From NCBI GenBank assembly GCA_964199315.1, contig OZ116709.1, positions 26,288,001 through 26,352,000 of the forward strand: DNA of 64,000 nucleotides. The letters run 5' to 3'. This document shows positions 13,901 to 64,000 of the stretch, in pieces. Under the pieces are notes generated by a model. It worked only from the letters and a program-made list of their open reading frames with translations. It did no database searches and was not told the origin of the DNA. The first letter of the stretch is position 1; every line of letters starts with the position of its first letter. Made by a program: the position numbers and the translations under genes. The stretch is from Orbicella franksi (taxonomy: Eukaryota).

Positions 13901-14304
13901 TCACGTAGCTTGCGTGACGCAGGTTCCGTTGTATGAACGGTGCCAATATAAGAGTTTGTATGGTAATATAACAAACGTATCAGCAGCTACAGAGAGGTAA
14001 ATCACGGTAGACTACGAGTGGTCCCTTTTCCGTCCAGGAAAAAAAAACCGCGATAAAAAAATGGCCGCTTGAAATCTGGTAGCTAGAAAACCAGATTTAA
14101 TTCAAGTGACCTTAAATTACTGATCCTGATCCAGATCACCCCAAAGAAACGCACCATAAGTTACAGGGACCGAAAAGCCATGCGAAAAATGTTTCTTTAT
14201 TTGAGTAACAATGACTTCTTGACCGATTCTAGAATGTCAGATTCTGATATTCACGGCTAGAAATTCTAGTAATATAAATAATATCTTGTTATTACCCTCA
14301 GACC

Positions 14305-26965: not shown

Positions 26966-29900
26966 TTGGAGGAGACAGGAGAACTGATTGAACTCGGGGA
27001 CTTTGCTGAGATGCATATCGCCAACAAACGAGCCGAGAAAATTATCGCGAAACTATCGGATCTTATTTCACAGACAGAAGAGTTGAAAATTGAGCGAGGA
27101 GTGACATCTCGTTCTGTGAGACAGTGGAAGAAAGACACCAAATCCAAATACGCAGCGTTAGTTATCGACAAGGAGAGGCTTGGAAAGTGTCTTAGTGAAA
27201 AAGAAGAGGAAATTGAGCGGCGGAAAGAAGATTCGAAACGGGAACAACAGATGGAAGACGAGTGGCGAATTTGCGAGCTCCGTGAAAGACAACAGAACCA
27301 CGAGCGTGAGTTATGGAAGGAAAAGCTCGAAGCAGAATTGCGGGTAGCGGAGAAGAAATTAGAAATGGAGAAAACCGCCGTTTCCAGCACAACTAAACTG
27401 CCGAAACTTAAGATGACACCGTTCAAAGGTACTGCTGGCGACTGGGTGAGATTTAAAAACATGTTCCTAACTCAAGTTGATGCCAAGTCAATTTCTGACG
27501 AAGAGAAATTCGGCTATCTGCTAGAATCTATCGGGCCGCAGGTGAGAGGCCGAATTGCAAACTTGAAATCTGGGCGTATTGGTTATAAGACGGCATGGGA
27601 ACGACTTAAAAAGGAGTTCGGTCAAACTAAAGTTGTCATCAATGCACACATGGACGAAATAATCAATCTACCTCTGGTCAAAGGAACGAATTATTTCAAA
27701 ATACAAGAGTTTTACGAGAGGCTGAGCAAAAACTATGACGCTCTCCAAACACTTGAAGAAGCTGAGAAATTACAAGGGTTTGTAATGAATACGATCAACA
27801 AATTGCCACATGTCAAACCGGACCTAGTACGAGTTGATGAGAATTGGGAGGAATGGTCGATGGAACATTTAATTGACGCTTTGCAGAAGTGGCTAAAGAG
27901 AAATCACGTGGAAAACAGCAAATGCGAGAAACATCTCTTCACACAGAGGCCAGGAGATAATCGGTCACCTTATTGCCTTTTCTGCCGAAAGCATGATCAC
28001 TGGAGTGGAAACTGCACCGTGGTATCAGGGTTGGTGAACAGAAAGAAGTTCTTTGTGGATCACAATTTATGCTTTAACTGTGGGCGTGCAAATCACAGAG
28101 CAGACCAGTGCCAGAGGCGCGGGTGCCTGAAGTGCAAATACAAACATCATACAAGCATATGCGACAGAGAGGAGAGAGAAAGCAGCAGTGCGAATGGGGT
28201 TTCGCTGACTGGCTACATTAATTATGCAGAGGAGAGAGTACTACCCGCCATAATTCCCGTGAGCATCAAAGGACAGGTTCTCTGGGCCTACCTGGACACA
28301 GGATCTGCATGCAATTTCATCTCGCGTGAGGCAGTCAAGATGTTAAAGTTGAAGCCAACTCGTCATGAGACCCGTGAAATCTTGACGGTCAATGGAACCA
28401 AAGTCCAGTCCATGCCAATCTTTGACACCCGCATTGAATCGCTGGACGGAAAATCATGTGAAGAAATTGAATTCACTGGCTCAAAGTTAGTGGACTTTAC
28501 CACAGTGAGAAGGCCAGACATGAACCAGCTGAAACTGAAGTACTCGCATACACGAGACAAGAGGTTCTACATGACGTCTTCAGGAGAACACCAGATACAT
28601 CTCATTCTCGGAGATAGCATTTACAGCAGAATAAGGACGGAGAGAGTGTTCAAAGGGAAGCCAGGAGACCCCCTAGTGCAAGAGACAACGTTTGGTTGGG
28701 TGGTCCATGGTGGAGATGAATATGGGAGTGGCAGCACCTGCATGTACTTGAGAGAAGCTAACGACTATGAGAAACTTTACAGTTTGGATGTACTGGGGAT
28801 TGAGGATCGGGGTGAGAATGATCAGCTGGATGTTCTGCGTGACTTCAAGGAGAGTGTAGTGAAAAGAGAGGATAGAAGATATGAGGTCAGTTTTCCATGG
28901 ATTCCTGGAACAATGTTATCGAACACAAATGAGACACTTAGCAGAAAGCGTCTTGAGAATGTGGAGAGAAAATTGTTGAGAAATGAGAAATTGAGAGAAG
29001 AATATGGTGGCATCGTCGAAGAGCAGCTCAAAGAAGGCATAATAGAAGAAGCTCCTCAGAATCCAACCGGAGAACGAGTATTCTACATGCCACATAAACC
29101 AGTTGTAAAGCAAAGTGCAGTTACCACGAAGGTTCGCATGGTGTTTGACGCGAGTGCTAAACCACAGCCATTGGCCAACAGCATCAATGACTGCATGTTT
29201 ACTGGGCCCCCATTACAGCCACTCCTCTGGGACATAATGGTTAGAGCGCGCATGTCCACAAATCTACTTCTGGGTGATATTGAGAAGGCGTTTCTGCAGA
29301 TAAGTGTTAAAGAGGAAGATAGAGATTCATTCAGATTCCTGTTCAATGTCAAGGGAGAAGAGAAGCATCTAAGATTTACACGTGTACCCTTTGGAGTTGA
29401 AGCGAGCCCCTTCTTATTGGGAGCCACTCTGCAGCATCACTTTCAACAGCAAGGGCCAGAGTTCTCAGAAACCGTGAGCGCACTCAAGGAGAACACTTAT
29501 GTTGACAATCTAATGCAAACGGGAGAAGATGATGAGAAGCTTGTGAGGTTCAAAGAAGAGAGCACTATCATAGTCGAGTCAGCTAAGTTTCCAGTTCACA
29601 AGTGGGAATCGAACGTTAAATGTTTTGAGAGTGAAGGCATGCCAAACCCTAGCAAGATTCTAGGACATACGTGGAACAAAGAAGATGATACACTGGAGCT
29701 GCCTGCAAAGCCTTTCCCACACGAACAGCCAGTGACTAAGCGAACTATCCTCAGTTATCTAGGAACTGTGTATGACCCACTCGGGATAATCTCGCCCACT
29801 ATGGCTGAAGGAAAACACATCTACCGCAAAACCTGTGATGAAAAGAAGAGCTGGAATGCAGAAGTTTCTACTCATTTGAAGAACCAATGGCTCAAGTGGA

Positions 29901-32119
29901 CAAAGCAGCTTAAAGATGTCAGAATTCCTAGAAGTGTTGCTACCTCAATTGGAGAGATGGAAGCAGTCCATTTACATATTTTCGCAGATGCAAGCATTCT
30001 AGCATGCTGTGCAGTGGCGGTTGCGGTTGTGGAGCACGGGACAGGCGTGGCTAAAGGGCTACTGACATCAAAATCACGAATCTCAAAGAGAAACACTTCA
30101 ATAGCTAGACTGGAACTTGTGAGCGGTCATATGGCAGCGAATATGGCGAAGAACCTTGGCACTGCTCTTCAGCGGTGGCCCATCAGATCTACCACCATTT
30201 GGATGGACAGCATGGTGGCGTTGTATTGGATAACCAATCCTGGCAAAGGTTGGAAGGTGTTTGTGGCCAATGGAGTGAAGAAGATAGCAGAAACCACTGG
30301 TCCAATCAACATCACTTGGAAGTACTCCCCATCCGAAATGAATCTAGCCGACCTTGGAAGTAGAGGGGCGACCATTGCAAAGATGGAGAGAGGAAACTGG
30401 TTTTCTGGTCCAGATTGGCTCTTGGATGAGAGACAGTGGCCACAGCAGCCAAGGCTGAACAACAGCAAAGAGACAGATGAGGAGTTCAAGGCCAACCAAG
30501 AGGCAGTTCTTCACACAGATGAGCGCAAGTTGGATGAGTGGGATGCATTGCTCGAGAGAAGTACCTACTGGCGGACATTGAGAGTAACAGCATGGGTTCT
30601 GAGGTTCGTCGGCAACTGCAAGGCGAGAAGAAACAAGTTAAAGAAAACAGCAGGGCCGTTAGTAACCGAGGAAATCACGACTGCGAGAAACTCCTGGGTA
30701 AAGCGAGTTCAGAAAGCAGACGAAGCATGTCTACAATCCCCGGGATGGAAGTTGGTCAGAGATGAACATACAGGTGTTCTCAAGTGTGAAGGTAGAATTA
30801 AAGGATACAGGCCAACGTACCTTCCTAGAGGACCATTTGCTGAGAAGCTTATTGTTCACACACACAATCAGGTCATGCATCTTGGAACTGCAAACACAAT
30901 GGCAAGTGTGAGAGAGAACTGGTGGATACTGAAGTTGAGAGCCAAAGTTAAGAAAGTTATCAAGAAGTGCAATGTTTGCAAAGTATTCTCCACCAGACCA
31001 TACGGAGTGCCGTCGACAAGTGCCTTGCCAGAATACAGAACAGAGGGGAGCAGACCATTCGAAGTGACCGGAGTAGACTTTGCCGGACCTTTTAGTTATA
31101 AGGTTGGAAAAAAGGAACAAGGAAAGTGCTACCTTATTATTTTCACATGTGCAAGCTCCAGAGCAATCCATTTAGAAGTAACAAGGACCCAAACAGCAGA
31201 CGAATTCAAGCAGAAACTCAATGCATTTATCTCACGTCGAACAAGACCTCGCATCATAGTTCTAGCGCTATACAAGTCTATTATTATTATTATTATCATC
31301 ATCTCAGACAATGCGAAAGTATTCAAGACTACAGCAGATTGGATCAAAACCATCAGGAAAAGTGAGAAGCTACAGGATTGTCTAGCACGTGAGAACATTC
31401 ATTGGTAGTTTAATCTTGCCAAATCGCCCTGGTGGGGAGGATTCTATGAGAGATTGATCAAGGAGATCAAGAAGGCGATACACAAGACCTTAGGACGGTC
31501 ACATCTTTCCTATGAAGCATTTGAATCAGTCATCATGGATGTTGAAAGAAATCTTAACAATCGACCCCTGACGTATGTTGAAACAGAGGGAGGAGAGGAA
31601 GAAGTGCTGACGCCGAATGTGATCCTGTGGGGGCGAGATGCATATCCAGTAGGGGACATTGAAAATTCTGAAGCAGAGAAGCTGACGAAGATAAGCAAGC
31701 GATTGGAAGATGCCAAAGCCCATGTGTGGAAACGCTGGAAGAGAGAGTATGTCCACAGCCTAATGGAAAGCCACAGGCTTAACAAGCAAACAGGAACCAC
31801 ACCTAAAGTGGGAGAAATTGTACTCATTGTTGGAGATGAGAAGAATCGCGGCGAATGGAAAAAAGGAAAGGTGGTGCGTCTTGTACAAGGTAAGGACGGA
31901 GTTGTGAGAGGTGTGACGTTGTTCCGTAAAGGACACACCATTGAGCGACCACTTCAGTTAGTCTGCCCTTTGGAAATCCGAGCAGTGGAAAATACTGATG
32001 AGCCTCAGGAAGGGAGGAGACAACAAGTTGACTTAAGAAGCCAGAGACCAAGAAGAACTGCAGCTCAGAGGGCTACCAAGAGAATTGCAGAACAGATGCA
32101 TGCAGAGGAGGAGTATTGA
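26966..32119 (+). pseudogene. BEL/Pao gag-pol polyprotein (DUF1759 gag, Cys/His knuckles, LDTGS protease, RT YVDN, Pao RNase H, HHCC-DDE integrase, DUF5641) with one in-frame stop and a 45-nt in-frame insertion
   Basis: ORFs 26966-31408 and 31454-32119 are in the same frame and are separated by TAG at 31406-31408 within [18 protein letters not shown]. No AUG is found at the start of the frame, which is open from 26867. Confidence 0.9.
31258..31296 (+). mobile_element. 39-nt LINE 3'-tail insertion with 6-bp TSD inside the integrase
   Basis: AGTTCTAGCGCTATACAAGTCT(ATT)n flanked by CATCAT at 31252-31257 and 31297-31302. Removing it restores RPRIISDNAK. Confidence 0.7.
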
Positions 32120-42165: not shown

Positions 42166-45100
42166 ATGGCTGTACATAAAAAGGAATGTAAGGTTCGAGT
42201 GCTAGTGCGCTTGCGACCCGAAAGTGCTGACTATAAAGAAAAAGAAGGGAGCCATCAAGATGGAATTCCCGATCGTTGTGTTCGAGCTGTGGATTCTTCA
42301 ACACTGGAATTGTGGAATTGTAGAAATTCTGATGAGTCAATTCGCTACCGGTGAGTGTTAAATATGAGGATAGCCGTAGATCACCTTATGGGAAACTCAA
42401 CAGGATTTCAATTGAATCGCGGCTTTGATACCATGCGGACGATTCGTTAAATAAATTAAAAGCAAACGACGATAAAACAGCCGATAAAACATAACCTCAC
42501 ATTCTTCTGAAAACCAGATATACAGTAGGGTATCCGGTCACTTCGCTCCATGGTTAGATCGCTCCAACGCGTATATAGATTATTCCTCGTTCTTTCATCC
42601 ACTGTACTGCCAAGCCAAGCTCGGTTTGCTGAGGTAGCGAATTCGGCCTGTGTGGCTGGAGCGAACTGACTTGCAGTGATCTAACCATGCAGTGAAATGA
42701 CCGTAATTCGTTGGTAGACTTGGAATTTTAGCTTCTGTGTAACCTTAAATTATAAGTTTTGTAGCGTTCTGACCGGACAGGAGACCTCTAAACTTGCACT
42801 AGAAATGTAATTCGTACTGTCATGTAGTTTTCCTAAAATCGCATCAGTTTTTAAGCTACTCAATTAGCTACACTGGTCAGATGTTTTTCGTTTGAGTTTT
42901 CGTATTTTAATTGTCTGCCCTGTGTTATTCAGATTCAATGGCTTTTTTGATGAAGACAGTACACAAGAGACATTGTACCACAACTCAGTTTGCCCGCTGA
43001 TTCCTTATGTGCTACAAGGCCACAATGCCAGTGTGTTTGCATATGGTCCCACTGGGGCAGGTATGGAGATCTTTCAGTTGTAAACTTCCTTACAAAACTA
43101 TCTGTCCGAAATAGAGAATACACTGTATATTTAAAAAATGCCAAATAAGACAGAGAAGCTTTTCTGTGAGCAGTATCTCCATTAATCCATTAAAAAAAAG
43201 TCTCCATTAATTGTCAAAGAAAAAAATACTAACAGACAGACAGACGGACAGTGAAAATAACCTGCTCCCTAACCCTGGAGCCCAGCCCTTATTGAAATCC
43301 CTGTACCCTCCACATGTGAGAAATTCTTGATCTTTGCAGTCTCACTCAAGGGGGCAGAAAGATGAGAGACCCTGAAAATGAGGTTGCCAAAACTGTAAAT
43401 TAGATAGTACATTTATGAACTGAATCCTTATTTTTCCTTTTACAACAAATGAAGGAAAAACACACACAATGGTTGGATCACCAGAACAACCAGGTTAGTA
43501 GAATGTCCTGGCTTTTTATTAAGTTGATAAATGTGGACAATTTAGTACCTTTATTAACTGCCTACATGTAATAGCAAGGTTGTGAAGCTGATGTGTTGAG
43601 TATTGGTGCTTTATCTGAGCAAAGGGCTAATGCTTGGAATGTCAGCCGTACAAGCACACTTCAGAAATTAATTTAGCTTTTTCTTCAAGTTGATAAAATG
43701 TATTATAGCTAAGTGTTTTGCTTGCTTAACAGTGCAGACCAACAGTTTCTTTGGACATTGAGTCTCTTCTCACATCTTGGCTTTTTGCTCACAGTCTTTT
43801 GAACCTCCCTCCATAGATTTTAATTTGAAGACTGTGCATAGTTCAAGGATCAAGGCATGATTAAATAAATATTTGATCAAATATTAAATGAATTTATAAA
43901 GAAATACTAGATACCCTGCAAGCCGCTCTAAGGTACTTGCATGTGATATATAGGGTTATGACAGTTTAATTACTGATAAAAAAATGTGTCTGCATAATAG
44001 AATCTCCACTTTTGTTTTGTTTTTCTACTAACTTCTGCAGGATTAATACCAAGATGTGCAGCTGAATTGTTCAAACTGATAGATTCACTCTTGGATTCAA
44101 ATTCACAGTGGAAATACAAGGTTTTCTTTTCATACCTGGAGATATACCAGGAAAAGGTGGCTAATATACTATTATATATCGTTATATTATTCCATACACA
44201 GGAACAGGTGACCGTTCTTCACAGTATTTTTCTGAAAATTATTATTAATAAATTTTCACAGAGCTCTCGCGGGATGAGAGTCTCATCTTGGGAGACGAGA
44301 ATCTGGTCTCTCTAAAGGGTGGTAACTTACTTTGGAGCGGTACTGTAATTAGAGGGTAGGTTGACAGAAGGGGATCAGAAAATAAGAGATCTTTATTTTG
44401 GTCCCTCCCCGTCCCTTTAGTAACCCCCTTCATGCTTTCACCTTTGGCACACTTCACTTCACTTTGAAATTGAAGTAAAAAACATTTAGTTTATGAATCA
44501 AGATTTATAATAGGTATTTGTAACTGAAGGACACATTGCCTCTTTTTTTAACCTGACATTGTGAAGTGTATGTACTTACTGATTCTGAAGATCTGATCTT
44601 GGTATCAGATTAAAGACTTGTTGGATCCCAAGAAAGATGATTTACCAATAAGACAAGATCGGAGACAAAATATCATCATACCAAATTTAACAGAGGTAAA
44701 GTTGATAGTCTTACAAGCACTTTAACAACACATTATCACAATTAATTTATCTAATTCTCTTCTAAAGCAAAATGTTTCTTTCGTTGGTAATGTTCCATTT
44801 TTCACACCTTGTGAAATTAATGTCTGATGAAAATTGTCGTTCTTATCTCCCAAAAGATCTCCTCCCCCCGGAGATGATATAATTGCATACATGATTGCAC
44901 AGGTCTACAGTCATGTGCTAGGTATTCTTCAGTGGCCATGAGTCAGCGGCTTCCCACATATCATCTGCATGTATACCAGAACTACTGACAACACATTACA
45001 AGAAGCTGTAGAGAATGCATACCATATCAGCAGGTCACATATGTATTAACCAAAATTAATAAGACATGTCATAAAGTTGAACTTTAGTTCATAGTATAAT

Positions 45101-46831
45101 CATAAATGAATTTTTTTTCAGGATTGGTACCTTAATGATGGCATGTGTAACTTGTTGAACACTGTTCATTCTAGCAGTATGTGGGATGCATGTCATATGT
45201 GAACCCAGTAAATGGCCTATCTCATGGAGAGTCTCTCTGTAGCTCGGCTTTTAGAGCACCTGGCGGGTATATCGGGAGTTATGGGTTTGAATCCCATCAT
45301 GCACTCAGATTGTTTCCTTGCCTTACACTTGTGACATGCTGAAAATTTCACCTTTCTTTCAGATGCCAATAGAAACTCTGGGTGAATTTATGTCCTTATT
45401 TGAAAAGGCCAGTCAGCAGAGGTTTGTATGTTTAATTGCTGCCCATGTATCACTTGGGAATGAAATTGAATGTTTAAAATGATACCTGAGAGGAAGTGAT
45501 GGTTGACAAGCATTTCTCAGCTTATTTGGACTAATAATATTGAACTTCCTTGAAACCAAACAAAGATGTGTACCTGTCAGTGGGTTGGTTTTGATCCTTG
45601 CAGGAGATTCTCGTAGTTTTGATCTATAATTTTAATAAGTGGTTTACTAGGACACATGAAGTAGCTAGCCATCCCAAAGGACCAATAATTTGCTGTCTCA
45701 AGAATGAGGTTTTAAGTTAAATGAATGACAGTTAATAATAAGTTGCTGCTAATTGAACAGAATTTGCTGAAAATTATTTTAGCATTTGTTACATTTTTTT
45801 TCTATTTAGCAAATAATGGAATATAATAATTTAGAGAAGTTGTATTAAATGTGATAATCTTTTAGGACAACTGCAGCTACAAAGCTGAATCCACACTCTA
45901 GTAGAAGCCATTCTATTGTGTTGATGAAGGTACTGTACTGTACATTTTTTTCTTACTAAAAATCAGTCAGTGACAAACCATTTTTGAGGAACTGGTCAGG
46001 ACCTTTTTCTTTCAAGTAGTTTATGCCACTGTAATACTGTAGCAATATTCGTTTGCACGCATTGCGGTCCTGTGGTTTTAGGTAATACGTGTAGTTTTGA
46101 ATTCTCTTCAGGTTCAAAAACAGCAGCCACTAGCACCATTCACAAAACTCAGTGGAAAGTTTTACCTTATTGACCTGGCAGGATCAGAGGACAATAGAAA
46201 AACAGGAAATGAGGGAATAAGGTGCTCTATAATGCAATACTTGATATTTTATGGTTTCTACATGTATGAAAAGGACTGTGGTGACTAAAGTTCTCTTAGT
46301 AGAAGTCATCTTCAGGGTCATGTGATTTTCTTCTTCAAAAAAATCCCAGGCCTACCCTGATGAGTCTGAGGCCTAACACTAAATGAACTATGCTAATACT
46401 CCTGATTTTATCCCATTTTTAAAACTAAAGTTGAATCTGCTCCTTATCCTTGTATCCAGTTTGCGTTACTTTCGTCAATCTCCGTTTCCATTGGCTCACC
46501 AGCTGTTTACAATAGGAAAATCATTGGAGGGAGGGGGGAAAGGGTGGGGTAAATTGCTGGTTTCTGGAAATTCAGTAGTCTGCCCCAAAATGATCTTTGC
46601 TAATTGGTGAAGTTATGAGTGTAAGAGGTCCTAAGCTGGCCGATCTGGAAAGACTTTGTATCACTGACTTTGAGGTGGGCGAGGGGGAAGAAGAGACACC
46701 GAACTTTTTGTGGAGGAATGATATCTTTTGAAAGTGAAGAATGATCATCGCAGTTAATTTTCCAATTTAAGCAGTTGGAAAGACGAAGCCTGAGAAAAAT
46801 CAGGGCTTCAACGGGATTCGAACCCGGTATC

Positions 46832-53278: not shown

Positions 53279-54901
53279 CGAAAGATACCTTAAACCTTCG
53301 TCGAAACAATCACTGCTCCTGCCTACTAATAACTTAGTCAGACAGCAGAACTTTGCATGAGGAATGTCAACACAAGCTTGCCCAGAACAGTCTTTTGTTG
53401 CTACAGTTTACAGAAAGTTACCTTGTGCCTCTGTTTCAAAACGAGTCTTCGTGCAAAACCTTTGTTATGAAAATTTTGATTTGCATGAAAATGGAGCCTG
53501 TAGGCGGAATCATTTTCATATGAATGGTTTTGCACGTGGACTCGTTTTGACACAGAGGCAAAAGGAAACTCGGGAATATCCTATTATTTTTACAAGGGAA
53601 TTTGAGTAGTTTATAAATCTAGATTTATTAAGTGATGACGTTTTATGAATCAAGAGAAAATTAGAAGGCCGATGAACCCTAGCTGCAAAGGAACAAGTCG
53701 ATGAATCGATCACTAACCGCACGCTTGATAAGGAAGTAACAGCTAACTCCAGAAACGGGCTAAATGAATCCTAAAGGGATATGGTCTACTTGTAAGTCTC
53801 GTGCCCATTTTGTGCTCGCCTTAAGTTCGATTTTGTCCTTGTTAATTAGTAGCTTATTAAAGTCTCTTTTTGTCATTTTAAAAAGGTTTACGCAAATTTC
53901 TGATGAAAGCGGGAAAATATTTTTTGACAGGAAGTCTGTTTTTTTTTTCTATAGGGGTTATTTTTGCCCTTTCTATGGCATTTCTAGGAATTGCTGTGAT
54001 GACTTGAAAATAGGCTAAGAAAATTACAGCTCTAAAGATATTTCTCTGTAAATTTTGTGTACGACGTGACGTTATCATCAGCGTCTAGGAGACCCTGGAT
54101 GAGATAAACACCCTTTTCAAACCAATTTTTGTAGGAGATAGAGCATCCGTCCAACAATATGTCTTTATTATTGAATAAAACAAATTCTTGATGTGAAAAA
54201 AAAGTCGTTGTAGGATGTCTTAAATTGCAGGAAATGCTGAAGGATTTCTTTGTAGAACTGGGGTAAATTGATCCTTGCAAGAAAATTTTTTATCGTAGTT
54301 ATAACTTTAACAATTATTCCAGGAGTGCACATTGGTATGGGATGATGGCTAGTCAACGAGGTACGTAGCACCAAGTTGGCTTTAATCATCTCATATCCAA
54401 CAAGCGTAAGTGAAGTAATCGTTTTATTAAAAATGCCCTCAAAATATGAAAAACTAAAAGAAAAGAGAAGAAAAGATGTGCAAAAAATTACACTTAGGTA
54501 ACCATATTTGTAGAGCACCGTATAATATTGTTCATACCCCAGGAAGGCTAAGCCATTATGGTGTGAAATTAGTGAAAGTAGCCCATTTTACAGTTCTGTA
54601 GTTAGTTATCAGGTCTGCGAGCAAAAGCCTTTGTACATGCCAGAGAATGATCCAATGAATTCAATTGTAACACTCACTTTTACTTTGAAATGTAGGAAAA
54701 TGACTCCAAGAGAGCCAGACACTCAAAAAGACCGCTGATCGATGCACTGTCAACATCTGTCGTCTTGCGGATCATTTCTGACATGTATATACAGGCTAAT
54801 AAGTACATAATTTTGTCGGTTTTTACAAAACTGTGCACGGTTTACAAGTTATTACTTTTACTAGAACATTATAGATGCCACAAAAGACAATAGGATTCTC
54901 T

Positions 54902-57900
54902 CTAGGCAATGCACGAAGATACAGTGTTGTTATTTTCTAGACTGAGATAAGCCAAGGCGACTTGTGAGAACTCTTGCATTTGGCCCATGAGCAAATCCTC
55001 TGCATTAGGATACGTTGGCAGACCTAAAGTCTCCAGGTTAAAACTGAGGACTCTCAAGTAAAACACACACAGCAGCACTCCACGGATAACCGTTTGGCAA
55101 GCTTTTTCTTCGTTCTTACCTCTCCTGGCTTGGAATTCCTTTAGACATTTAAAAACTACTTGGGCCCATTTATCAGATTTTAGAAAAACAGATCGGTTTA
55201 CACTCTGTAGCCGATTGACGAACTCTGACTGTTTCTCTTGAGGCATCGCTTTAGGCTTGTCCCACGCCAGCACACCACAAAGGCCATTCGCTTTGAATTC
55301 TTCAAAAGCTTCTTTGATGCCATCAAACAAACCACCGAGAACATCCATGGCGTTGCTTTTGAATTCACGGTTACTGTATTGGACTAAAAACGAATGCAGA
55401 GCAGCGATGATTTCAGCATTCTCCGATAGCTCAACTTTCATGTTGGTATTCTGAACGGCTTCAATTTTAACGACAGGTGCAATGGTTAGATCGGTTGTTA
55501 TCCAAAAATGTGACGATTCCAACCAATCAATCAAACCATTGAAGAGACTTCTTCCTTCCTGGACAAAGATGTCACCAACTTGCATCCTGGCATCATCCCC
55601 AACGTAGTTGATTTTTCTTGGTAAGGACAGCTGTCCGATTGGATCGCCACTTGTACCAGCAGTAACACTCATCCCCATATCAATCCCAAAATCTCTCCAG
55701 CCTTTCACCCACTTTTCAGCGTCCGTAAGCCGTTCGAGTGTTTTTCGATTGAAAGCGAACTCGCCCCCAATTGGCTGGCGAAGGACATTACGGGTGACAG
55801 CGGAGTAGAGTGGGAACATGAGATGATTGGTAGCTCTGCCTTCATACTTGTGTCGCCAGTAAAGTGGAACAAGATACGAATATCCCTGAGAGAGTCCAAG
55901 GCACATGCGATATACAAAGCCATCTGTACCTGAGAACAAAATCAATAACTTGTCATAATATGGCGGGCCTATTACAAAATGAAAGAAAATTGTGTCTTCT
56001 TAGTGATTCCTTGAGTGATCCGAGTTTTGTTTAACAGAAGGCTGAGAGAGGCCTTTTACGGGTTGATTTCGTCATCATCGTCATCATCGTCATTATCATC
56101 ATAATCACTCTCGCGCTAGAAGGCTCGTAAGGTCAGACCTTTTACGGAGTAAGTTTTCATGGGTATTTTTCGTGATGGGTGCATAACACCAGGCCCCAGT
56201 TGTTAAGAAAACGAATAACTTTAACCAGTGATTAGGTTGCTATCCAGTAGATAAAATGTATACTCCGACCAAAGCTTTTGGTAACTTTTTTTTACACAAT
56301 CACGCGTCTACTGTATACACAAATTATAGGGAAATCCCGGCACACATTTAACCTGCCCCATGGTGACCTATCCAGTGGATATAATTATCTACTCTTTGAA
56401 CAACTGGGGCCAGGCCTTTTGCGGGTTGATTTCAAAGAAGTACTCTTTCTGATGTGTGCTCAAGGCGAGGTCTCATGTTTCAGCTACGAGTTTCACTTCA
56501 CATAAGTATTTTTTCCACATGTGTGTATGAAGATGGTTTGTTGGTTCTACTCACCTTTTAAGTCGGAATCGATGCAGAGTACGTGGGCGTTGTCGTTTTC
56601 TTCGTCTTGCAAGGCGAAGTGACGAATAAAATTAAACGCTGCCTCAAATTGCGATCCTTTTCCTCGGACGTCGGTTTTGCCGGGACACAAAGTGAAAATG
56701 TCACTGTCCTCAGTAACCACAGTTGCAAAGTCAATATGATACCTAAATGAATGACAGAAAGAAAGAAAGGAAGTTAATTAAGACAACTCAGTGCGATTGT
56801 CCAACTCGTGGACTTGTGGATATTGAGAACTTACTTGCACAAGTCAATCGTCATTTGTTTTAGAGACTGTCTAAATAATTGACTTTCCCGTATTAAATCA
56901 TTCGTCTGCGGTTTAAAAATGAAATTTCGATTCCTTTACGTTACTACTTCCCGTCCTTCGTGTTTACTTAGTCCACATCTTGGTCCATCGGTATGGCAGG
57001 AGTCATGGCCTCGATCTAAGACGATTTTTTAGGCTTTCTTTTCGCGACGTCTTAAGTTGCGCCCATATCTACTATGGTGTTTAATTTAACAAATCTTTCA
57101 TTTTTAATTCACAGATATAAAATTTCATATATTTCACTTTCATTAATATCGTAATATTTTATCGAAAATGGTTTATCCAGTCGTACAAAAGAGACCAAAT
57201 CCGTTATGATATTTCGCTATATTGTCTCGCATCCTTGCCCACGACATTTAAGTTCCCATAACTGAGTTGGACCCTCTAGTGCATGTGGAATTCCCTACTC
57301 TTCAAAATAAGATAAATATTTTTTCCTTGCTTACTTTTCCAGCAGGGGCGCAATTTCTTTGTCATGTTGAACGTCTAGAAACCACGGTCCAGTCATACTG
57401 GTGTTTGATTTATTTTTGTGCGTTCCGTCTGCCATTAAAATGAGAATTTTGCCATCTTTGCATACACCGCGCTGGATCAGGCGTGCAAAATCTTTAACGG
57501 CTGCTTTGGCAACACCTTGAACCGTTTCTCGCTCTGTGGCTCGATAAGATGGCGTCAGAAGAATGGAGGTATATGCGTTAAGTCTGAAATAATTATTTGT
57601 CGTAGTTAGTAAGTTAAGCAACCATCCCTCTTTGATGATAAACACCTTTTCGTTTAAACAATGTTATAGAAAGAGCCCAGAGAATTTCCTCGGCTAAATA
57701 AACAATAGTCTTCATTTGGCCTGAACTGCTCGGGTATTTGTCCGCGGATATTATCTGTTCCGAGAAGCGAACAGTTTTCCGAGAGCGTAGCTCGAGGAAA
57801 ATTGTGAGCTTCTAGTTGAGCAACAGATAATATCTAAGGACAAATATCTAAGCATATTTTGGCGGCAAATGGAGTTCATTTTGTTTATTATCCTTCGAAT

Positions 57901-58342
57901 ATTTTTCGCAACCGCAAAGTTTTGAAAATTGGGAAATATCATCGTTTTAGCTGGGGAATATTCGGTCACGCGACGCGTTTAGATCAATCGCACGCGAGCG
58001 AAAATATTTGATGGATTATAACAATGCTTAAAATGAGAAACCCTTTCGATGCTTGTGTATGATATGCAATGAAAAAGGATTAAATCACTTTGCACACCCG
58101 CTCGTCCCAGTTTGACCGCAAGAATGTCATTGAAGACTACAGAGGATGAGATATCTTGTTGAAGATGAATACCCTGTGCCCTCCATATAGGCAGTAATAG
58201 CCTCTCACCTGATGGCCTCGCCCTTGTTTGTCCATGTGCGAAATCGCAGCTGACCACTTTGACTGTAGACATGTCCAGGCCCCACGTCCACTGTGATATC
58301 GTGGGACTGGTACTGTTTATTATCACGAATGTATTTCAGCAT
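54902..58342 (-). CDS. GT-A-fold glycosyltransferase resembling prokaryotic glucosylglycerate synthase (Ggs) / mannosylglycerate synthase, about 532 aa; exons 58342-58209, 57583-57335, 56742-56555, 55929-54902
   Basis: GT-AG introns with phases 2, 2, 1 give a continuous 1599-nt frame. Ordered motifs: LLTPSY, ILMADG, RGKGS, CIDSDL (DxD), GYSYLVPLYWRHKYEGRATNHLMFPL, LRQPIGGEFAF, FGIDMGM, PRKIN. The N-terminus is uncertain because an acceptor lies at 58351, so upstream exons are possible. Confidence 0.8.
56192..56411. mobile_element. MITE in intron 3 of the glycosyltransferase gene
   Basis: TIR GGCCCCAGTTGTT / AACAACTGGGGCC. Confidence 0.7.
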
Positions 58343-58548
58343 CTTGATTTCTTGATAAAATACAGAAGAAAATTACATTTAGAATAGATCATTTTTTCTT
58401 ACGACTGTCCAAAACAAACCAACTGTTTGAGTTTCTGAATTTGGCAGTAAGAAATTAAAGCGAACAATTGCATACATGAGCAAGCGGACACAAACTTCTG
58501 GAGGCCTAGTTGCTATGATATACAGTTCTTACTTAACAGATCGTGATA

Positions 58549-58838
58549 CTACGATTATCAGTTGAGTAAGGCACGAGGGAAGTTTGGTTACGAAGTTTTG
58601 GCCTTGAAATTATGGTGTTGTCACGGGCAACTTACCTCGTTTCCATTGGTAACAATATCAACGGCCGTTGGTCGCCTGTCGCGTCGCCTACAATTTCGCG
58701 CGCGTTGCTGCCAATGACGTAAAAGGCCGACAAGTTACCAATGGATACGGAGCCAGTTGCTCTTGACAATAACAAGACTTTTACGTTAAAACTTGGTAAC
58801 CAAACTCTCGTCCCGCCTTACTCAACTGATAATCGTAG
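58549..58838. mobile_element. Long-TIR MITE with TA flanks
   Basis: CTACGATTATCAGTTGAGTAAGG / CCTTACTCAACTGATAATCGTAG, with imperfect inverted symmetry extending over about 100 bp per arm. Confidence 0.75.
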
Positions 58839-60962
58839 TAAGTCCGTGTGTAACCCTTTGTGCATGTCATATGTACATCCTTATTGACCATTAGAAATAA
58901 CAAATTGACGTGTTTTTTATGCGTCTGTCTTGTTATTGATCATGAATTTCGTCATAAACATTGTCAAAGTAGCTGTGTATCCGTACACTCCTTTGACAAT
59001 GTTATGATGAAATTCATTGTCAATAAGAGGACAGACGCATGAAAAACCTACGTCAATTTGTTTTTTACGATAACAAATTGTCAAATTGTCCGCTCTCGCT
59101 CGTTGACGCATCGCATGAACTATAATGTGTCTGTCCGCTTATTGACAATGAGTCACAAGTCACAACTGATCGAGTTTCGATTTTTGAGCGAGTTTTATGT
59201 TTAACACATAAACCTTAAACTCGTTTGAAATGACCAAACATTCAACACAAATTACCCAGACGACACAAAGACAACCCCACGTTGAGGCAAGTGTGGTTTA
59301 TTTACACAGATAAGGCTATTTTTCTAAGCAGTTTGACAAATGAAGTGAATATCCGAAAGTGAACATGGGTTGACTGTGCTTACACTGTCTCGTTGGTTTC
59401 TCTGTGGTCTTTTAGGTTTCCCGCTGGTTTTTTTTTGTTTTATTTTTTTGTTATGTTTGTCTTTGTTTTTGTTTTCTTTTTTTTTTGGTTGTTTGGTTTT
59501 TTGTTGTCGTTCTTGTTGTTGTTTTAAAGTACAAATCATCAAGCCCTTGTGATTAGAGGGTTTTGTTACAGGGGCAGAGCAAAATTTTAGAGTCACATTG
59601 AAAGAAGGACAGGGAAAATCAGTGGAAGGCTATTTATCCGACCAATACATGTTTGTTTACCTACGGACACGATCTGAGCTCCTGCGTGATCTCGATCGTT
59701 TCAGAGAATTAAGTTTAGACCTTTGAAAGAAGAACAGAGCCGTTCCTGCAGTATGTGTAATTGTTGCGCTTTTAGTTGATTTAATGAATGACCAAGTTAC
59801 TTTTCTACAAAGAAAGGGCATCGCAACAAATTTGCCTCGGCCGTTTTACCGTGTTGAAAGCACTCGTCGATCGATGAAGGACTTTTGGGAACAGCGATTT
59901 TATTCTCTGCCGATTGTTGTGACTTCGATTCTCAACGTTATTTAATCAAGAGAGCTTTACAGAATTCAAGTTCTCCCAGACTAATTCCGTCTTCTTTAGT
60001 TAATTCGGATTCTTGTCGGTACAAGCCATATCTACGTAAGTTTATAGCATTTCTCAGGCAGCTCTCTGATCTATCGCTGGTTAATCTCTAATCTAGACGA
60101 CCAATCTAGACTAAAATAATTCCCGATCGGTTTAAACAGGGTTTTGACTTTTCAGGAGGCGTTACTCAATGGAACAGCTTTTGCCGTTTGTCAATATTGA
60201 TGACTACATACTGCAATGTACACAAATAAATTCATTTGAGTTAGAGAACAGTACTCGTAAACGTTTTGATGGAAATCATTTTCTGCTTTCGTGACGATCA
60301 CGCGCGGAGCACATGAAAAGTGAGAAACGTCAATCATATTTTTCGCGCCAAAAGTTTACGCTCTGATTCACAATTGGATTTGCAAGCCAAATCATTCATA
60401 ATTGAAAAGACCTTGAACTGTGCTGATGACTGGAATTATCATAAAAAAAGGGAATATAAGCGGTGAAGCGAAACATGTGTTAGTGGACTTTTAACAGGCG
60501 TAGTAGAAGTGTGGAATATCGAGGGCGAGTATTAGTGGTGTAGCGGTTATCACCTCTGCATTGAATGCAGGAGACCGCTAGGGACTAGAAATGTCCCATA
60601 TCTAGTACTCAACCAATGTTTTGCTTAGAGACGCCCCCATCCCTCCTGAGCCTCCACATGTTTACCGGACAAATTATTACTAAGATAATAAATTTACTCG
60701 TTTGCATCGACTAATTAGTGTCTCAAACTCCACCGTGTATGGAAAGGTCTGCATTCGACGCAGACCTGTGATAAAAGCAAAAACAAGTTAAACCGGTGAT
60801 ACGGCTTAAGGCTCCCGAGGCCGCATCGCTCAATCGACTTTCGTTCTGGTAGCATAGATAAAGCACTTCATTGAAATCCCAAAGCCACAAAACAATTTTA
60901 ACGTTTCGATTACTTAGCTGAGCCTTTCAAGTTACAGATGATATATGATGAAAATTGCTTAC

Positions 60963-61125
60963 CTTGGAAACAGATCGACGTCTGTGTTCAAAGCACACTT
61001 AAAGCCACTCCTTTACCAAATACAATGTGCACACACCACGCACTGCTTTTAAACTAAGGACACCGCTTTTGAACTAAAGTGACGCCCTCTGGGATTAGAC
61101 GTCGAGGACTACGCATGCGCTACAC
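60963..61125 (-). promoter_or_regulatory. Putative promoter and non-coding first exon of a minus-strand transcript, possibly the glycosyltransferase gene
   Basis: NRF1-like ACGCATGCGC near 61111-61120 and a strong minus-strand donor AAG|GTAAGC at 60963/60962. A further candidate exon lies at 59745-59661. Confidence 0.3.
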
Positions 61126-61749
61126 GTTCCAGATTCCTGGGAAAGTGATTTCATGCGTGAACGAACAGTCGTACTGCGTTTACAGGGTATAAAATTTTGT
61201 GGTGGTAACATGAAAAACGAATACAGAGCCACAAAAGGGAACAGGAGTGAACTAGTACCGAATTGAAGGTCGGCGCGGCATCAGAATCAGTAAACCAACC
61301 GAACGAAATGGCGCTTACTATTTACAATTCGATTTCCTGTAATTGTTTTCGGCTGATGAGACACTGGAAACTGAAAAAATGTAACAAATGGTAAGGAAAT
61401 TTCCGCCGTTCAGTTCCGAACGAAAAAAGGTCTACTTCTGGAGGTAGTCTCTAAATTTCCGAAGGGATTTTACGGAAATTTACTGTACATTTGACTTTCC
61501 GCCGAAATTTCCGGATTTTCTGGCTAAATGATAAGCGCCCTTGATCGTTTGATAAGGAGGTAAAATTTTATAGCAGATGATCTGTATCTGTTCTCAGGAC
61601 ACCAATGAAAAGGCTTCCTTGCCCGTTTTACGCCCATCTCGGGCCAATTTATTAACGTATACATTTTTAACATGCTGTATGTGTGAATAAATCTAGACAC
61701 AATATTTACAACTTTCTACAATAGTCCTCCTAAACTAATTTCTGGTTAT

Positions 61750-63435
61750 TCAGCTCATGGCGGATGTGACATTGGTGGCAGCTGTCTCGGCTCTTCTGAT
61801 TTCATTCGTGATCTGTGTCAGATCTTGGATGAACACTTGAATCTGAAGATTAAAAACGTAAAGAGGAAGCACAATCAGCAAAAGATTACATTTTAAACGT
61901 CTTACACGATAACAGACTGGCGAGAATCATGACGACAACAAAACAACGCGCTCTTACAAAGCCCCGTCCACATTACACTGGAGGAATTTGAAAACGCAGC
62001 TTTATTTCTACGGTTTTGCCTGCTGTCCACACCGATATAATCCATCAAGAAAACGGAGCTTTTCGAAAACGCTCTTCAAACCGCAGAAATTTGAAAACGC
62101 CGGCTTCAGTTGCGTTTTAGTGTGGGCGGAAAACATTTTGAAAACGGAGCTATTCGAAAACGATGACGTCACGATAATCACGTGATTTTCCTGCCCGAGT
62201 TTTCCTCAAACACAAATCCAAAATGACCGGTAATTGATGCGTTTTCAGATTCCTCCGACAGAGTTAGGACGGAAAACATTATTTTCATGCGTTTTCAGAG
62301 TAAAAGCTGCGGCGTAGTGTGCACGGGGCCTTAGCATGTGTTAGCCCAGGAATTGAGCAAATGCACTGTCGCCACAGGGTAGAGAGTATTCTGCGGTATT
62401 TGCGGACTAACAGTCTGTTTCGCATTCTAGCAATGAGCGCCCGTGACCCTCGAACGCCCCAATCCCATATTTACCTGCTTCGTTTAAAAACTAAATTAAA
62501 ACAGTTATTTTTTGAACTAAATAATAATAAATATTATGCCTTTCCCTTTACATTTTCTAACCACCAAAGGTTGCCCTGACTCGATAATCTTTTGATGGTT
62601 CGTCTTTATAAAGGTTCACTTGCTACATAGCCCTAGTCTCGTTAGTTCTTGCCAAGGCTGCGGTCTAAGAAAAACTACGAGGAGCCCAAAGGCTCCTACC
62701 CATGAAATCCTGGGTGCCCAGCACGTAAGCTTTTGCCCAAAGGCAAAAGCTAGTGGTCTGTGGCACCCGGGTGTTTTTAGAGCACAGCCCTGCTTACTGA
62801 TTTCAAAGCCGATTTAACCTTTAGAAAGAATGCACTGCATACAGCACTGCATACAATAAGTCATTTCCTAAAGTAAGCATGTGGGTAAACCAGATTTATG
62901 ACAAACCCGGAAGTGTGTAAGAGACGGTGCAATTTTCGTCAGTAATACCGAAGAATGGAGAACGCGCGTTCAGACTACTGACTGCGATCAGACGAAGGAA
63001 ACACTCAGTAGCACTACAGAGAAGCATTACCTTTTCCAGCTGTTTTTCAGTGAGTTCTATGACTGTGTTCTGTTTCAGGTGTCTGTTTACGAGCATAAAC
63101 AGGTTATGGGTTGCCCTGCCGGTAAAAAACGAACACTTTTACTAAAGGCACTCATGAATGAGCAGAGTCTGACTGAACTAACATTCAAAAATAATCCTTA
63201 AAATGTTGACATTTTTACTTACATTTTTATTCTTCCTAAAAGGAGAGTTTTCTTGGCCGCTGTGTTCTGTATGTGAGTCCACTGTGATTCCCTGAAAACA
63301 GCAAAGTGTCTGAATTGTAACGTTGATGTATTTGATGAATGACGCATTTTTTCATCAGTGCTGAATGAAAGATAAAGTTTACCATTTGACGGCCACGCTC
63401 TGAGCCTTCTCCAGCTGTGTCTGTAAATGTGCAAG
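61750..63435 (-). CDS. CCDC42/CFAP73: 3' four exons of CCDC42/CFAP73-family coiled-coil ciliary protein (63435-63383, 63291-63223, 63115-63031, 61842-61750); the gene probably continues beyond the window
   Basis: Spliced translation [56 protein letters not shown]...EKQLEKIQVFIQDLTQI..* carries the family signature [22 protein letters not shown]. Minus-strand AATAAA at 61653-61648. Confidence 0.88.
61960..62330. mobile_element. PIF/Harbinger-like MITE in the last CCDC42 intron
   Basis: TIR (A/G)GCCCCGTCCACA / TGTGCACGGGGCC with TTA on the right flank; same family as 18983-19287. Confidence 0.7.
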
Positions 63436-64000
63436 CTATTCAATTTAATAGAGAAGGCAAAAATAAGATTATTATCGAGAATAAAAATCGTTGAATGCCA
63501 AAGTTGTTAAAAGAGTTAAGTTATGAATATCATTAGGTGGCATTCCTGTGCGTGACGTCGAATTACGTTACTCCTTATATTTCTTGTTAAATGCTTTAAT
63601 TAAAGCAACTGACCATTCGATCTCTTAATTCTACAAGGCTTATAAAGTCAATCCTTTATAGAGGAATAGCCACAATTAAAGGCTTTTGTAAAGGGAAAAT
63701 TATAATTAAAGGACAACTTTTACTAGTATGAGAAAATGTATGCTGCAAAACCGATCAAAAGTGACAATAAAGGTCAGATTTTGCAGCATAAATTTTCTTA
63801 AACTGTCCACCATGTTGGAACAACTATGGGTAAAGGTAAAGAATCCAATCACACTGATGCGTCGGTTGACACTCGGCTGACAAGCCACGAACAGTCGACC
63901 GACAGTCAGCCGACTATCAGCGGACTGTCAGCTGACGCGTTGGCCACTGTTCATCCTTAACCTACCTTTACCAAACTGAACTTAAATGTCTGGTAAATGG

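Follow-up and report, generated by a model that had tools for sequence, protein, structure and literature searches.

The glycosyltransferase gene described here, which lies in a 64-kb stretch of coral DNA (the window, meaning the whole stretch that was analysed), is genuine, host-encoded, spliced and conserved. On balance, we read it as a working gene of the coral nucleus that encodes a soluble GT-A glycosyltransferase with two domains, of the glucosylglycerate synthase (GgS)/mannosylglycerate synthase (MGS) kind; the host lineage would have acquired it, and its product would be a glycosylglycerate. This GgS/MGS-type gene is probably an ancient transfer into animals that has since been domesticated. 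The acceptor, donor, product and physiological role proposed below are predictions.

Gene structure, transcription and genomic setting

The gene is located on the minus strand, and its parts are distributed in the window as follows, together with a neighbouring animal gene.

58342..54902, minus strand: glycosyltransferase gene, 4 exons, 532 codons without internal stop
58209..58342, minus strand: exon 1, start codon and 44-aa N-terminal extension; X2 contig 58209-58354 and joint
57584..58208, minus strand: intron 1, 625 nt, GT..AG; joint 57583/58209 in RNA contigs; contains a multi-copy repeat
57727..57854, no strand assigned: inverted-repeat (foldback or MITE-like) element inside intron 1
57335..57583, minus strand: exon 2, first half of the nucleotide-binding GT-A domain
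57544-57555, minus strand: TPSY motif in exon 2
57424-57435, minus strand: MADG motif in exon 2
56743..57334, minus strand: intron 2, 592 nt, GT..AG; cDNA L084 exon blocks and collinear full-length orthologues
56555..56742, minus strand: exon 3, carries RGKGS and the DSD metal/nucleotide motif, with the equivalents of MGS Lys76, Asp100 and Asp102
56652-56666, minus strand: RGKGS motif in exon 3
56559-56570, minus strand: DSD metal/nucleotide motif in exon 3, aligned with MGS residues
55930..56554, minus strand: intron 3, 625 nt, GT..AG; joint 55929/56555 in RNA contigs
54902..55929, minus strand: exon 4, acceptor-site motifs, C-terminal helical domain and stop codon
55808-55861, minus strand: YWRHKYEGRATN acceptor-site motif in exon 4
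55757-55780, minus strand: RQPIGGEF acceptor-site motif in exon 4
55670-55690, minus strand: FGIDMGM acceptor-site motif in exon 4
55604-55618, minus strand: RKINY in exon 4, Asn in place of the metal-ligand His
55040-55063, minus strand: FYLRVLSF in exon 4, C-terminal helical domain
44067..46288, plus strand: kinesin motor-domain exons of the neighbouring animal gene (Pfam Kinesin, two exon ORFs)

The exons measure 134, 249, 188 and 1028 nt (1599 nt in total) and run from an ATG at 58342 to a stop codon at 54902-54904, while alignment of the orthologous cDNA L084 extends the 5' UTR to at least 58367. Spliced transcripts were observed in polyA RNA run X2, where two of the three joints (57583/58209 and 55929/56555) are present exactly in the assembled contigs. 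No joint of intron 2 was seen directly in the RNA runs searched; this intron is backed by L084, an uninterrupted orthologous contig that falls into four blocks on the window with exon edges matching within 1-8 bases. Collinearity with the gene model was also found for six full-length orthologues (516-527 aa). In two polyA runs sampled at 12%, expression was nil. A preliminary description of this DNA had proposed a four-exon, stop-free gene of 532 codons with canonical introns, and this structure is borne out by the reading frame, the three GT..AG introns, the RNA and the cDNA. The motif series that it listed, from PSY to FGIDxxM, is likewise present in the same order in the translated exons, with PSY at protein positions 56-58, ADG at 96-98, GKGS at 155-158, DSDL at 186-189, YWRHKYEGRATN..PL at 214-231, RQPIGGEF at 241-248 and FGIDMGM at 271-277. 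A pseudogene reading was considered and rejected.

One of the introns had been said to contain a MITE. We observed an inverted repeat in intron 1, with arms of 33 nt (57727-57759 and 57822-57854) that are 82% complementary. RNA-contig depth at about 57640-58140 was about 1000, against 4-19 on the exons, and because this excess is about 100-fold and involves 10-12 distinct contigs, the element is taken to be multi-copy; no second copy was found elsewhere within the 64-kb window. Its assignment to the MITE class is tentative.

The gene had also been placed between KIF22 and CCDC42. Kinesin motor exons, which may be those of KIF22, are present at 44067-46288, where the two exon ORFs match Pfam Kinesin with E-values of 0.0026 and 0.00016 and motor motifs such as LIDLAGSE are found, but no CCDC42-like coding sequence was found in 58343-64000 by ORF listing, composition or Pfam. 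Genes for gpgS, gpgP and glycerate kinase are absent near the coral gene within the window, and its neighbours are animal genes. Such partners are not to be expected as neighbours in a eukaryote anyway.

The closest named relatives of the protein are microbial, as they would be if a symbiont or bacterial gene had been misplaced in the coral assembly or if the DNA were a contaminant. This explanation is extremely improbable and was rejected. The three spliceosomal introns are backed by RNA and orthologous cDNA, and the window is free of assembly gaps and also encodes a GPCR, an Ig-domain protein and a Pao retrotransposon besides the kinesin exons. In addition, the GC content is host-like (45% in the coding sequence and 36-40% in the introns) and the four-exon gene recurs in independent assemblies of other corals.

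Predicted fold, active site and microbial relatives

The AF2 model of the protein (pLDDT 88.6, pTM 0.91) has an N-terminal GT-A domain followed by a C-terminal helical domain, a layout that is also seen in the Foldseek alignment and the MGS superposition. Its top Swiss-Prot match in Foldseek is the Petrotoga mobilis GgS (UniProt A9BEU2; E 1.2e-17, TM 0.78 by the hit), with residues 46-520 of the model aligned to residues 14-391 of 393. The model superposes on MGS over both domains (Z 28.4, rmsd 3.4 Å, 366-374 of about 380 residues) and on glucosyl-3-phosphoglycerate synthase (GpgS) over the GT-A domain only (Z about 19). Extensions beyond the recognisable core had been described at both ends. 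The 44-aa N-terminal one is confirmed and is modelled as beta strands (pLDDT 64-85), whereas the helical C-terminal region is a homologue of the GgS/MGS C-terminal domain with inserts. Inserts of about 20-30 aa were noticed in both domains.

About 100 cnidarian sequences conserve the equivalents of MGS Lys76, Asp100, Asp102, Thr139 and Asp192 and of the QP(L/I)GGE loop, and those of Arg131, Asp135, the Leu163 loop and Trp189 (as Phe) are also aligned and conserved; the roles of these active-site residues in MGS have been described (PMC2581804). The exception is the position that corresponds in the alignment to His217, the Mn ligand of MGS, and that forms part of a KIH motif in prokaryotes. The coral protein has Asn here (Asn298), as do 115 of 120 cnidarian sequences; among the other five, Arg occurs three times, Asp once and Thr once. 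Asn or Asp at this position could still bind metal.

When the full-length cnidarian orthologue P0007 was searched directly against Pfam, NCBIfam and the sequences of the PDB, nothing significant emerged, with no match to Pfam MGS_GT or to the NCBIfam GpgS models, and exon 4 of the coral gene scored 14.8 bits against MGS_GT (PF21969), below the gathering cut-off of 27. The link to GgS/MGS emerged from profiles and structure only. The family profile matches MGS with an E-value of 1.4e-19, and phmmer recovers many proteins of about 400 aa at E 1e-19 to 1e-10. In a search of 1.84 billion representatives, all non-cnidarian matches of known origin were prokaryotic or dinoflagellate, about 340-440 aa long and with shared motifs. 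Alignments of 107 sequences and of 12 sequences both show the family signature GKG, DxD, YxRHKY(D/E)GxxTN, RQPIGG(D/E)F and (F/Y)GID in their consensus. The closest language-model clusters and structure clusters are all prokaryotic, and overall identity between cnidarian and prokaryotic members is 22-27%.

Some of the prokaryotic relatives are annotated as glucosylglycerate synthase; they belong to a Thermotogota clade that includes a Petrotoga protein, and were recovered with a Thermotogota query. The cnidarian profile aligns with this clade in hhalign with 99.7% probability (E 4.8e-27, 376 columns), and BLASTP against Petrotoga sp. P0419 gives an E-value of 1e-15 with 24% identity over 368 aa. 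Membership of the GgS/MGS group, as claimed before, is thus supported by this alignment and by the P. mobilis GgS as top structural match; the link consists of the structural match and the named relatives. A reading of the protein as part of a widespread metazoan glycosyltransferase family was considered and rejected.

A scan with the 12-sequence alignment located 598 prokaryotic genome stretches that encode a relative. Among 80 such loci sampled for context, a Methanococcoides-type GpgS (NF040724, E 1e-106) was observed near the relative in 29, an MPGP/GpgP-family HAD phosphatase (TIGR01486, above cut-off) in 28, a mechanosensitive channel in 11 and a glycerate 2-kinase in 10. In Persephonella marina, ggs likewise adjoins gpgS and gpgP.

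Proposed origin and function in hexacorals

Orthologues were found in the stony coral Porites evermanni, in the sea anemones Actinia tenebrosa and Actinostola and in many coral assemblies. The four-exon structure is common to the cnidarian orthologues, Porites has tandem copies, and dN/dS values of 0.15-0.26 indicate purifying selection. No contig was located for the Actinia protein P0034. The 44-aa extension is kept in the anemone protein P0036 and is absent from prokaryotic relatives. The anemones Actinia tenebrosa and Actinostola are not known to harbour algal symbionts, and the presence of the gene in them argues against a role specific to symbiosis. P0041, whose origin is unassigned, is a divergent sister sequence with degenerate motifs (RQCMTGIF), and the family is therefore able to drift.

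The cnidarian clade (support 98) arises from an unresolved polytomy on a long stem of 1.64 substitutions per site. In this tree, which holds no characterised GgS sequences, Thermotogota members fall in a different subclade. Linkage to animal genes, splicing, purifying selection and microbial relatives outside Hexacorallia, the last being the expectation for a horizontally acquired, domesticated gene, all agree with the origin first proposed. The hexacoral ancestor (of stony corals and sea anemones) would have acquired the gene from a donor outside the animals, whether prokaryote or protist. The gene would then have gained spliceosomal introns, a host-like base composition and the 44-aa N-terminal beta module, and would afterwards have been kept by purifying selection, with tandem duplication in some corals.

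A dinoflagellate or other alveolate, rather than a bacterium directly, may have been the source, with the function unchanged from that given above. We regard this as unlikely. The dinoflagellate Polykrikos kofoidii carries three tandem units of the family, and a constraint tree that unites cnidarians, P0041 and Polykrikos was not rejected (p-AU 0.58) and has a likelihood slightly above that of the free tree (+2.57 lnL). However, the free tree keeps the two eukaryote groups as separate long branches in the polytomy, long-branch attraction could unite cnidarians and Polykrikos, and the Polykrikos units are prokaryote-like in that each retains KIH and a length of about 390 aa. Dinoflagellates are moreover represented by this one sequence. 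Vertical descent of an ancient eukaryotic gene that was lost from nearly all other animals is very improbable. The family occurs in at least one other eukaryote and the tree does not resolve the donor, but no animal relatives beyond the hexacorals were found in protein sets of 1.84 billion and 5.8 billion, P0041 aside, the nearest language-model and structure clusters hold prokaryotes, and very many independent losses would be needed.

In the favoured reading of the protein as a GgS/MGS-type enzyme, an NDP-hexose, the nucleotide of which may be GDP, UDP or ADP, would be held by the DSD motif together with a divalent metal, and a Lys-Asp-Asp network would aid departure of the nucleotide. The conserved Arg...Glu...Thr-Asn segment would bind a small alpha-hydroxy acid by its carboxylate, D-glycerate being the likeliest candidate, and transfer of the sugar with retention would yield the compatible solute glucosyl- or mannosylglycerate, an alpha-glycosyl-glycerate. 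That hexacorals use an enzyme of their own, gained by ancient horizontal transfer, to make glucosyl- or mannosylglycerate is possible, and we propose it tentatively. The long stem and the low identity to prokaryotic members mean that specificity may have shifted. The protein might even have kept its fold and catalytic machinery while turning to a new acceptor, so that a glycosylglycerate is no longer made; candidates range from a different small hydroxy-acid or a polyol to a secondary metabolite or a macromolecule. Besides the long stem and low identity, this is favoured by the added beta module, the inserts in both domains, the change of the second metal ligand from His to Asn, the absence of glycerate-pathway partner genes nearby and the decayed motif of P0041. 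Nevertheless, we consider it somewhat unlikely, since positions that would be expected to alter with a new acceptor are nearly invariant in about 100 cnidarian sequences, namely the MGS/GpgS acceptor-carboxylate residues (the Thr139 equivalent, the preceding backbone and Arg) and the QPIGGE loop.

Thermophilic and halotolerant prokaryotes, as well as cyanobacteria, red algae and a small number of plants, have glucosyl- and mannosylglycerate as protective solutes, and neither is known from animals. If the favoured reading is true, this gene would represent the first animal pathway for microbial or algal stress solutes of the glycosylglycerate class and, on the host side, a genetically tractable factor in the tolerance of osmotic, thermal or nitrogen stress. 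A conserved, expressed host enzyme of the GgS/MGS type makes solute synthesis by corals and anemones a directly testable hypothesis, and such synthesis by the host may be relevant to coral stress physiology. The gene also adds a well-documented case of ancient, intron-acquiring transfer into Anthozoa, the source being a bacterium or a dinoflagellate-like protist.

Comparison with known systems

The coral protein resembles the P. mobilis GgS, its best reviewed structural match, and the Thermotogota relatives in its two-domain layout, and it shares with GgS the GKG, DxD, Y-R-H-K-Y-(D/E)-G-x-x-T-N, RQPIGG(D/E)F, (F/Y)GID and L-R-V-x-S-F motifs. It differs in its length (532 aa compared with about 390-400 aa in GgS) owing to the N-terminal beta module and the inserts in both domains, in having KIN instead of KIH at the second metal ligand, and in an identity of about 24%. 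Unlike GgS genes, the coral gene has introns and lacks gpgS and gpgP neighbours. The GT-A and C-terminal helical domains also superpose on those of the Rhodothermus marinus MGS (GT78; PDB 2BO4 and 2Y4J) with conserved catalytic residues, whereas identity is 14%, Asn occupies the His217 position and Pfam MGS_GT stays below cut-off. GpgS (GT81; M. tuberculosis 4Y6N and M. hassiacum 7P5L) shares the GT-A domain and the DxD and Thr carboxylate-binding positions, but nothing in it corresponds to the C-terminal helical domain. GpgS uses a phosphorylated acceptor and requires a phosphatase partner.

We found no literature that describes the coral glycosyltransferase gene or that connects corals or any other animal with synthases of glucosyl- or mannosylglycerate. 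Stress-related candidates for horizontal acquisition have been reported by Bhattacharya et al. (2016, eLife 5:e13288), whose main text mentions no glycosyltransferase. As with other acquired, intron-bearing anthozoan genes, the nearest relatives of this gene are non-metazoan, it occurs in both corals and anemones, and it is set among animal genes.

Gene model and host setting

The glycosyltransferase gene lies on the minus strand and its four exons sum to 1599 nt, which is 532 codons plus a stop, with no internal stops.

Exons of the glycosyltransferase gene (window positions)
58342..58209, minus strand: exon 1, starts with ATG at 58342
57583..57335, minus strand: exon 2
56742..56555, minus strand: exon 3
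55929..54902, minus strand: exon 4, ends the reading frame

All three introns have GT at the 5' end and AG at the 3' end. The joints 57583/58209 and 55929/56555, CT..AC as plus-strand sequence, are present in contigs of the polyA RNA run X2, so introns 1 and 3 are exactly as predicted; the intron 2 joint was not seen directly in these contigs. An orthologous coral transcript contig (L084) holds an unbroken 1584-nt ORF, encoding the full-length orthologue P0007, which maps to the window as four blocks (58367-58208, 57576-57336, 56735-56554 and 55931-54929) that agree with the predicted exons within 1-8 bases. No exon junction breaks the collinearity with six full-length orthologues (516-527 aa, 71-82% identity). 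With reading frame, two of three splice joints and transcript blocks in agreement, the four-exon, stop-free gene of the preliminary description is well supported, and its motif series was found complete and in the order proposed.

Intron 1 contains a 33-nt inverted-repeat pair, and the stretch holding it exceeds the exons about 100-fold in RNA-contig depth, across 10-12 contigs; the element is therefore multi-copy. It may be the intronic MITE suggested earlier. Introns 1 (57584-58208) and 3 (55930-56554) have an identical length of 625 nt, which is probably a coincidence, and comparing their sequences showed no similarity. Immediately upstream of the gene, the RNA-contig depth at 58475-59142 reaches 200-2000 with many variant contigs, indicating transcribed repeats adjoining the promoter region, and at a second coral locus (L082) both gene copies are preceded by conserved counterparts of parts of 59149-60812. 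Immediately 3' of the gene, 54300-54800 is covered by stranded polyA reads whose first mate is on the minus strand, so that this RNA is probably plus-strand. This suggests a convergent transcript, tail to tail with the coral gene, which may represent the kinesin gene's 3' end.

The window is free of N and also carries two kinesin motor exons (44-46 kb), a rhodopsin-type GPCR ORF, an Ig-domain protein and a Pao/BEL-type retrotransposon. The last (26966-32119) appears largely intact, with a 1480-aa ORF (protease, RT and integrase) followed by a DUF5641 ORF. The GC content of the coding sequence is 45%, like that of other coding ORFs in the window, while that of the introns (36-40%) is close to the whole-window value of 40%. 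Contamination, already doubted in the preliminary description, can be dismissed on the gap-free sequence, the animal genes alongside and the host-like GC, and host origin is well supported. Of the proposed flanking genes, KIF22 was borne out at the level of a kinesin, and no CCDC42-like sequence was found right of the gene (58343-64000).

Distribution and selection in Cnidaria

Dozens of ORFs from corals and anemones match the exon 4 peptide with 48-96% identity, among them those of Actinia tenebrosa, Actinostola and Porites evermanni (CAH3173822.1), which NCBI names as uncharacterised, hypothetical or unnamed. The window has a single copy; tandem duplication was observed in at least two other corals, and both Porites copies have four exons like the window gene.

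Gene copies at other coral loci
L083:10001-13733 and L083:20676-23730: Porites evermanni, tandem copies
L082:8307-11098, 14139-14505, 18632-19835: second coral locus, tandem copies with a fragment of the exon 4 3' end between them

Exon 2 of the first L082 copy matches in two different frames, which points to a possible frameshift (pseudogene or assembly error). For exon 4, comparison with L082 gives a dN/dS of 0.26 and comparison with Porites one of 0.15. The gene is common to corals and anemones and so was present before the two groups diverged; the low values show that selection maintains it. Actinia and Actinostola are not known to have algal symbionts, and a symbiosis-specific function is therefore unlikely. 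Local synteny is not conserved, as the neighbours differ from those in the window: the L084 contig ends in a convergent WD40 ORF (L084:3107-4132, minus strand), which from its sequence we take to resemble the mRNA-export factor RAE1/GLE2, and an EF-hand/RING gene lies upstream of the Porites orthologue.

As for a widespread metazoan family, no animal relatives beyond the cnidarian sequences were found in a word-indexed search of a 5.8-billion-cluster collection or among 1.84 billion representatives searched exhaustively with HMMER, and in the ESM Atlas the nearest clusters are without exception from bacteria or archaea. Full-text literature searches (glucosylglycerate or mannosylglycerate with coral, glucosylglycerate synthase with eukaryotes) yielded no coral or animal paper on such an enzyme, and no glycosyltransferase is named in the text of the main coral HGT survey. 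As an animal variant within a known family of enzymes, the gene has apparently not been described before.

Microbial relatives and origin

The exhaustive search returned 532 representatives beyond the cnidarian ones at E <= 1e-3; those of known origin include a deltaproteobacterium, a Woesearchaeote and the dinoflagellate Polykrikos kofoidii. The Polykrikos transcript (P0042, EukProt) encodes three tandem prokaryote-like units of the glucosylglycerate synthase (GgS) family in one 1179-aa reading frame. A structural match named 'Ggs protein' (A0A812MKL5) was also noticed among AlphaFold DB clusters. In a scan of genomes, 598 prokaryotic stretches were found to encode a relative, and 80 were kept for neighbourhood analysis (Thermodesulfobacteriota, Nitrospirota, Acidobacteriota, Planctomycetota, Thermotogota, candidate-phyla-radiation bacteria and archaea). 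Their recurrent neighbours are genes of glucosylglycerate synthesis and osmotic adjustment.

Genes neighbouring the prokaryotic relatives
29/80 loci: Methanococcoides-type glucosyl-3-phosphoglycerate synthase (GpgS; NF040724, E 1e-106)
28/80 loci: HAD phosphatase of the MPGP/GpgP family (TIGR01486, 223 bits against a cut-off of 165)
10/80 loci: glycerate 2-kinase (NF041176, E 6e-68)
11/80 loci: mechanosensitive channel (NF033912, E 8e-25)

The ggs gene of P. marina is reportedly located beside gpgS and gpgP. The GpgP enzymes of P. marina and M. burtonii are of the HAD type (PMC3240985).

The alignment between the cnidarian protein and its prokaryotic relatives of about 400 aa runs from end to end; the cnidarian protein differs by a few inserts and by an N-terminal extension of 44 aa. 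A cnidarian profile matches a Thermotogota profile at 99.7% probability (E 4.8e-27, 376 columns, residues 42-513). The Thermotogota member has relatives that include Thermosipho proteins named glucosylglycerate synthase and is 51% identical to a 391-aa Petrotoga sp. protein, which the cnidarian orthologue matches by BLASTP at E 1e-15 (24% over 368 aa).

A maximum-likelihood tree was built from 113 sequences, with the adjacent GpgS-type paralogues as root. It groups the cnidarian sequences in a single clade (support 98) whose stem of 1.64 substitutions per site lies within an unresolved polytomy of prokaryotic lineages. Its sister (support 97) is P0041 (L001:210-1466, Logan run SRR23916682), a 418-aa protein with 34% identity to the cnidarian one. 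P0041 begins at the exon 3 equivalent, and so is without the first half of the nucleotide-binding domain, and its motifs are degenerate (RQCMTGIF replaces RQPIGGEF); it may be a truncated paralogue or pseudo-enzyme. Polykrikos forms a separate long branch. Constraining all eukaryote sequences to one clade was not rejected and gave a slightly better likelihood (p-AU 0.58), and such a grouping may arise from long-branch attraction. The donor may have been a bacterium or an alveolate, and the presence of the gene in both corals and anemones makes the transfer ancient.

Active site and predicted structure

Residues of mannosylglycerate synthase (MGS), with roles taken from PMC2581804, were mapped onto the cnidarian protein through a HMMER alignment.

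MGS residues and their putative cnidarian equivalents
Lys76-Asp100-Asp192, ion-pair network: K156, D186, D274
Asp102, metal ligand: D188
Ile138 backbone and Thr139, glycerate carboxylate binding: A223, T224
Leu163, carbonyl loop: QPIGGE 242-247

At least about 95% of the cnidarian sequences covering these positions keep the residues (about 95-110 sequences at exon 4 positions, 10-14 at K156, D186 and D188), and the few exceptions at DSD are partial or odd sequences. MGS and GpgS are retaining enzymes (PMC2581804) and, by analogy, we infer that the coral enzyme would retain configuration and yield an alpha-glycoside. Its product may be a glycosylglycerate. Caution is needed over specificity, which might have shifted. 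The second metal ligand, His217 in MGS and part of KIH in prokaryotic members, is Asn in the window and in 115/120 cnidarian sequences (the others have one Asp, three Arg and one Thr); this change, the long branch of the clade and the extra N-terminal module all call for such caution.

Membership of the GgS/MGS kind is well supported by profile, BLASTP and structural matches, as the preliminary description had proposed. As no single reference exists for the spliced window protein, P0007 (82% identical; 84% over 408 tree columns) served as proxy for an AlphaFold2 model built from a 107-sequence alignment (mean pLDDT 88.6, pTM 0.91). Exon 1 is the sole true extension, a predicted small beta module conserved in anemones. 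The helical C-terminal region, previously regarded as a second extension, belongs to the conserved GgS/MGS architecture because the MGS match covers both domains, with a family profile match by sequence at E 1.4e-19. The best reviewed structural match to the model is the glucosylglycerate synthase of Petrotoga mobilis (E 1.2e-17, TM 0.78 by hit), followed by the mannosylglycerate synthases of Selaginella and Rhodothermus. Of the solved structures, MGS is the top match in Foldseek (E 2.6e-11) and also in VIA-align (Z 28.4, rmsd 3.4 A, 366-374 of about 380 residues, model residues 51-520), whereas GpgS and MpgS match over the GT-A domain only (Z 14-19).
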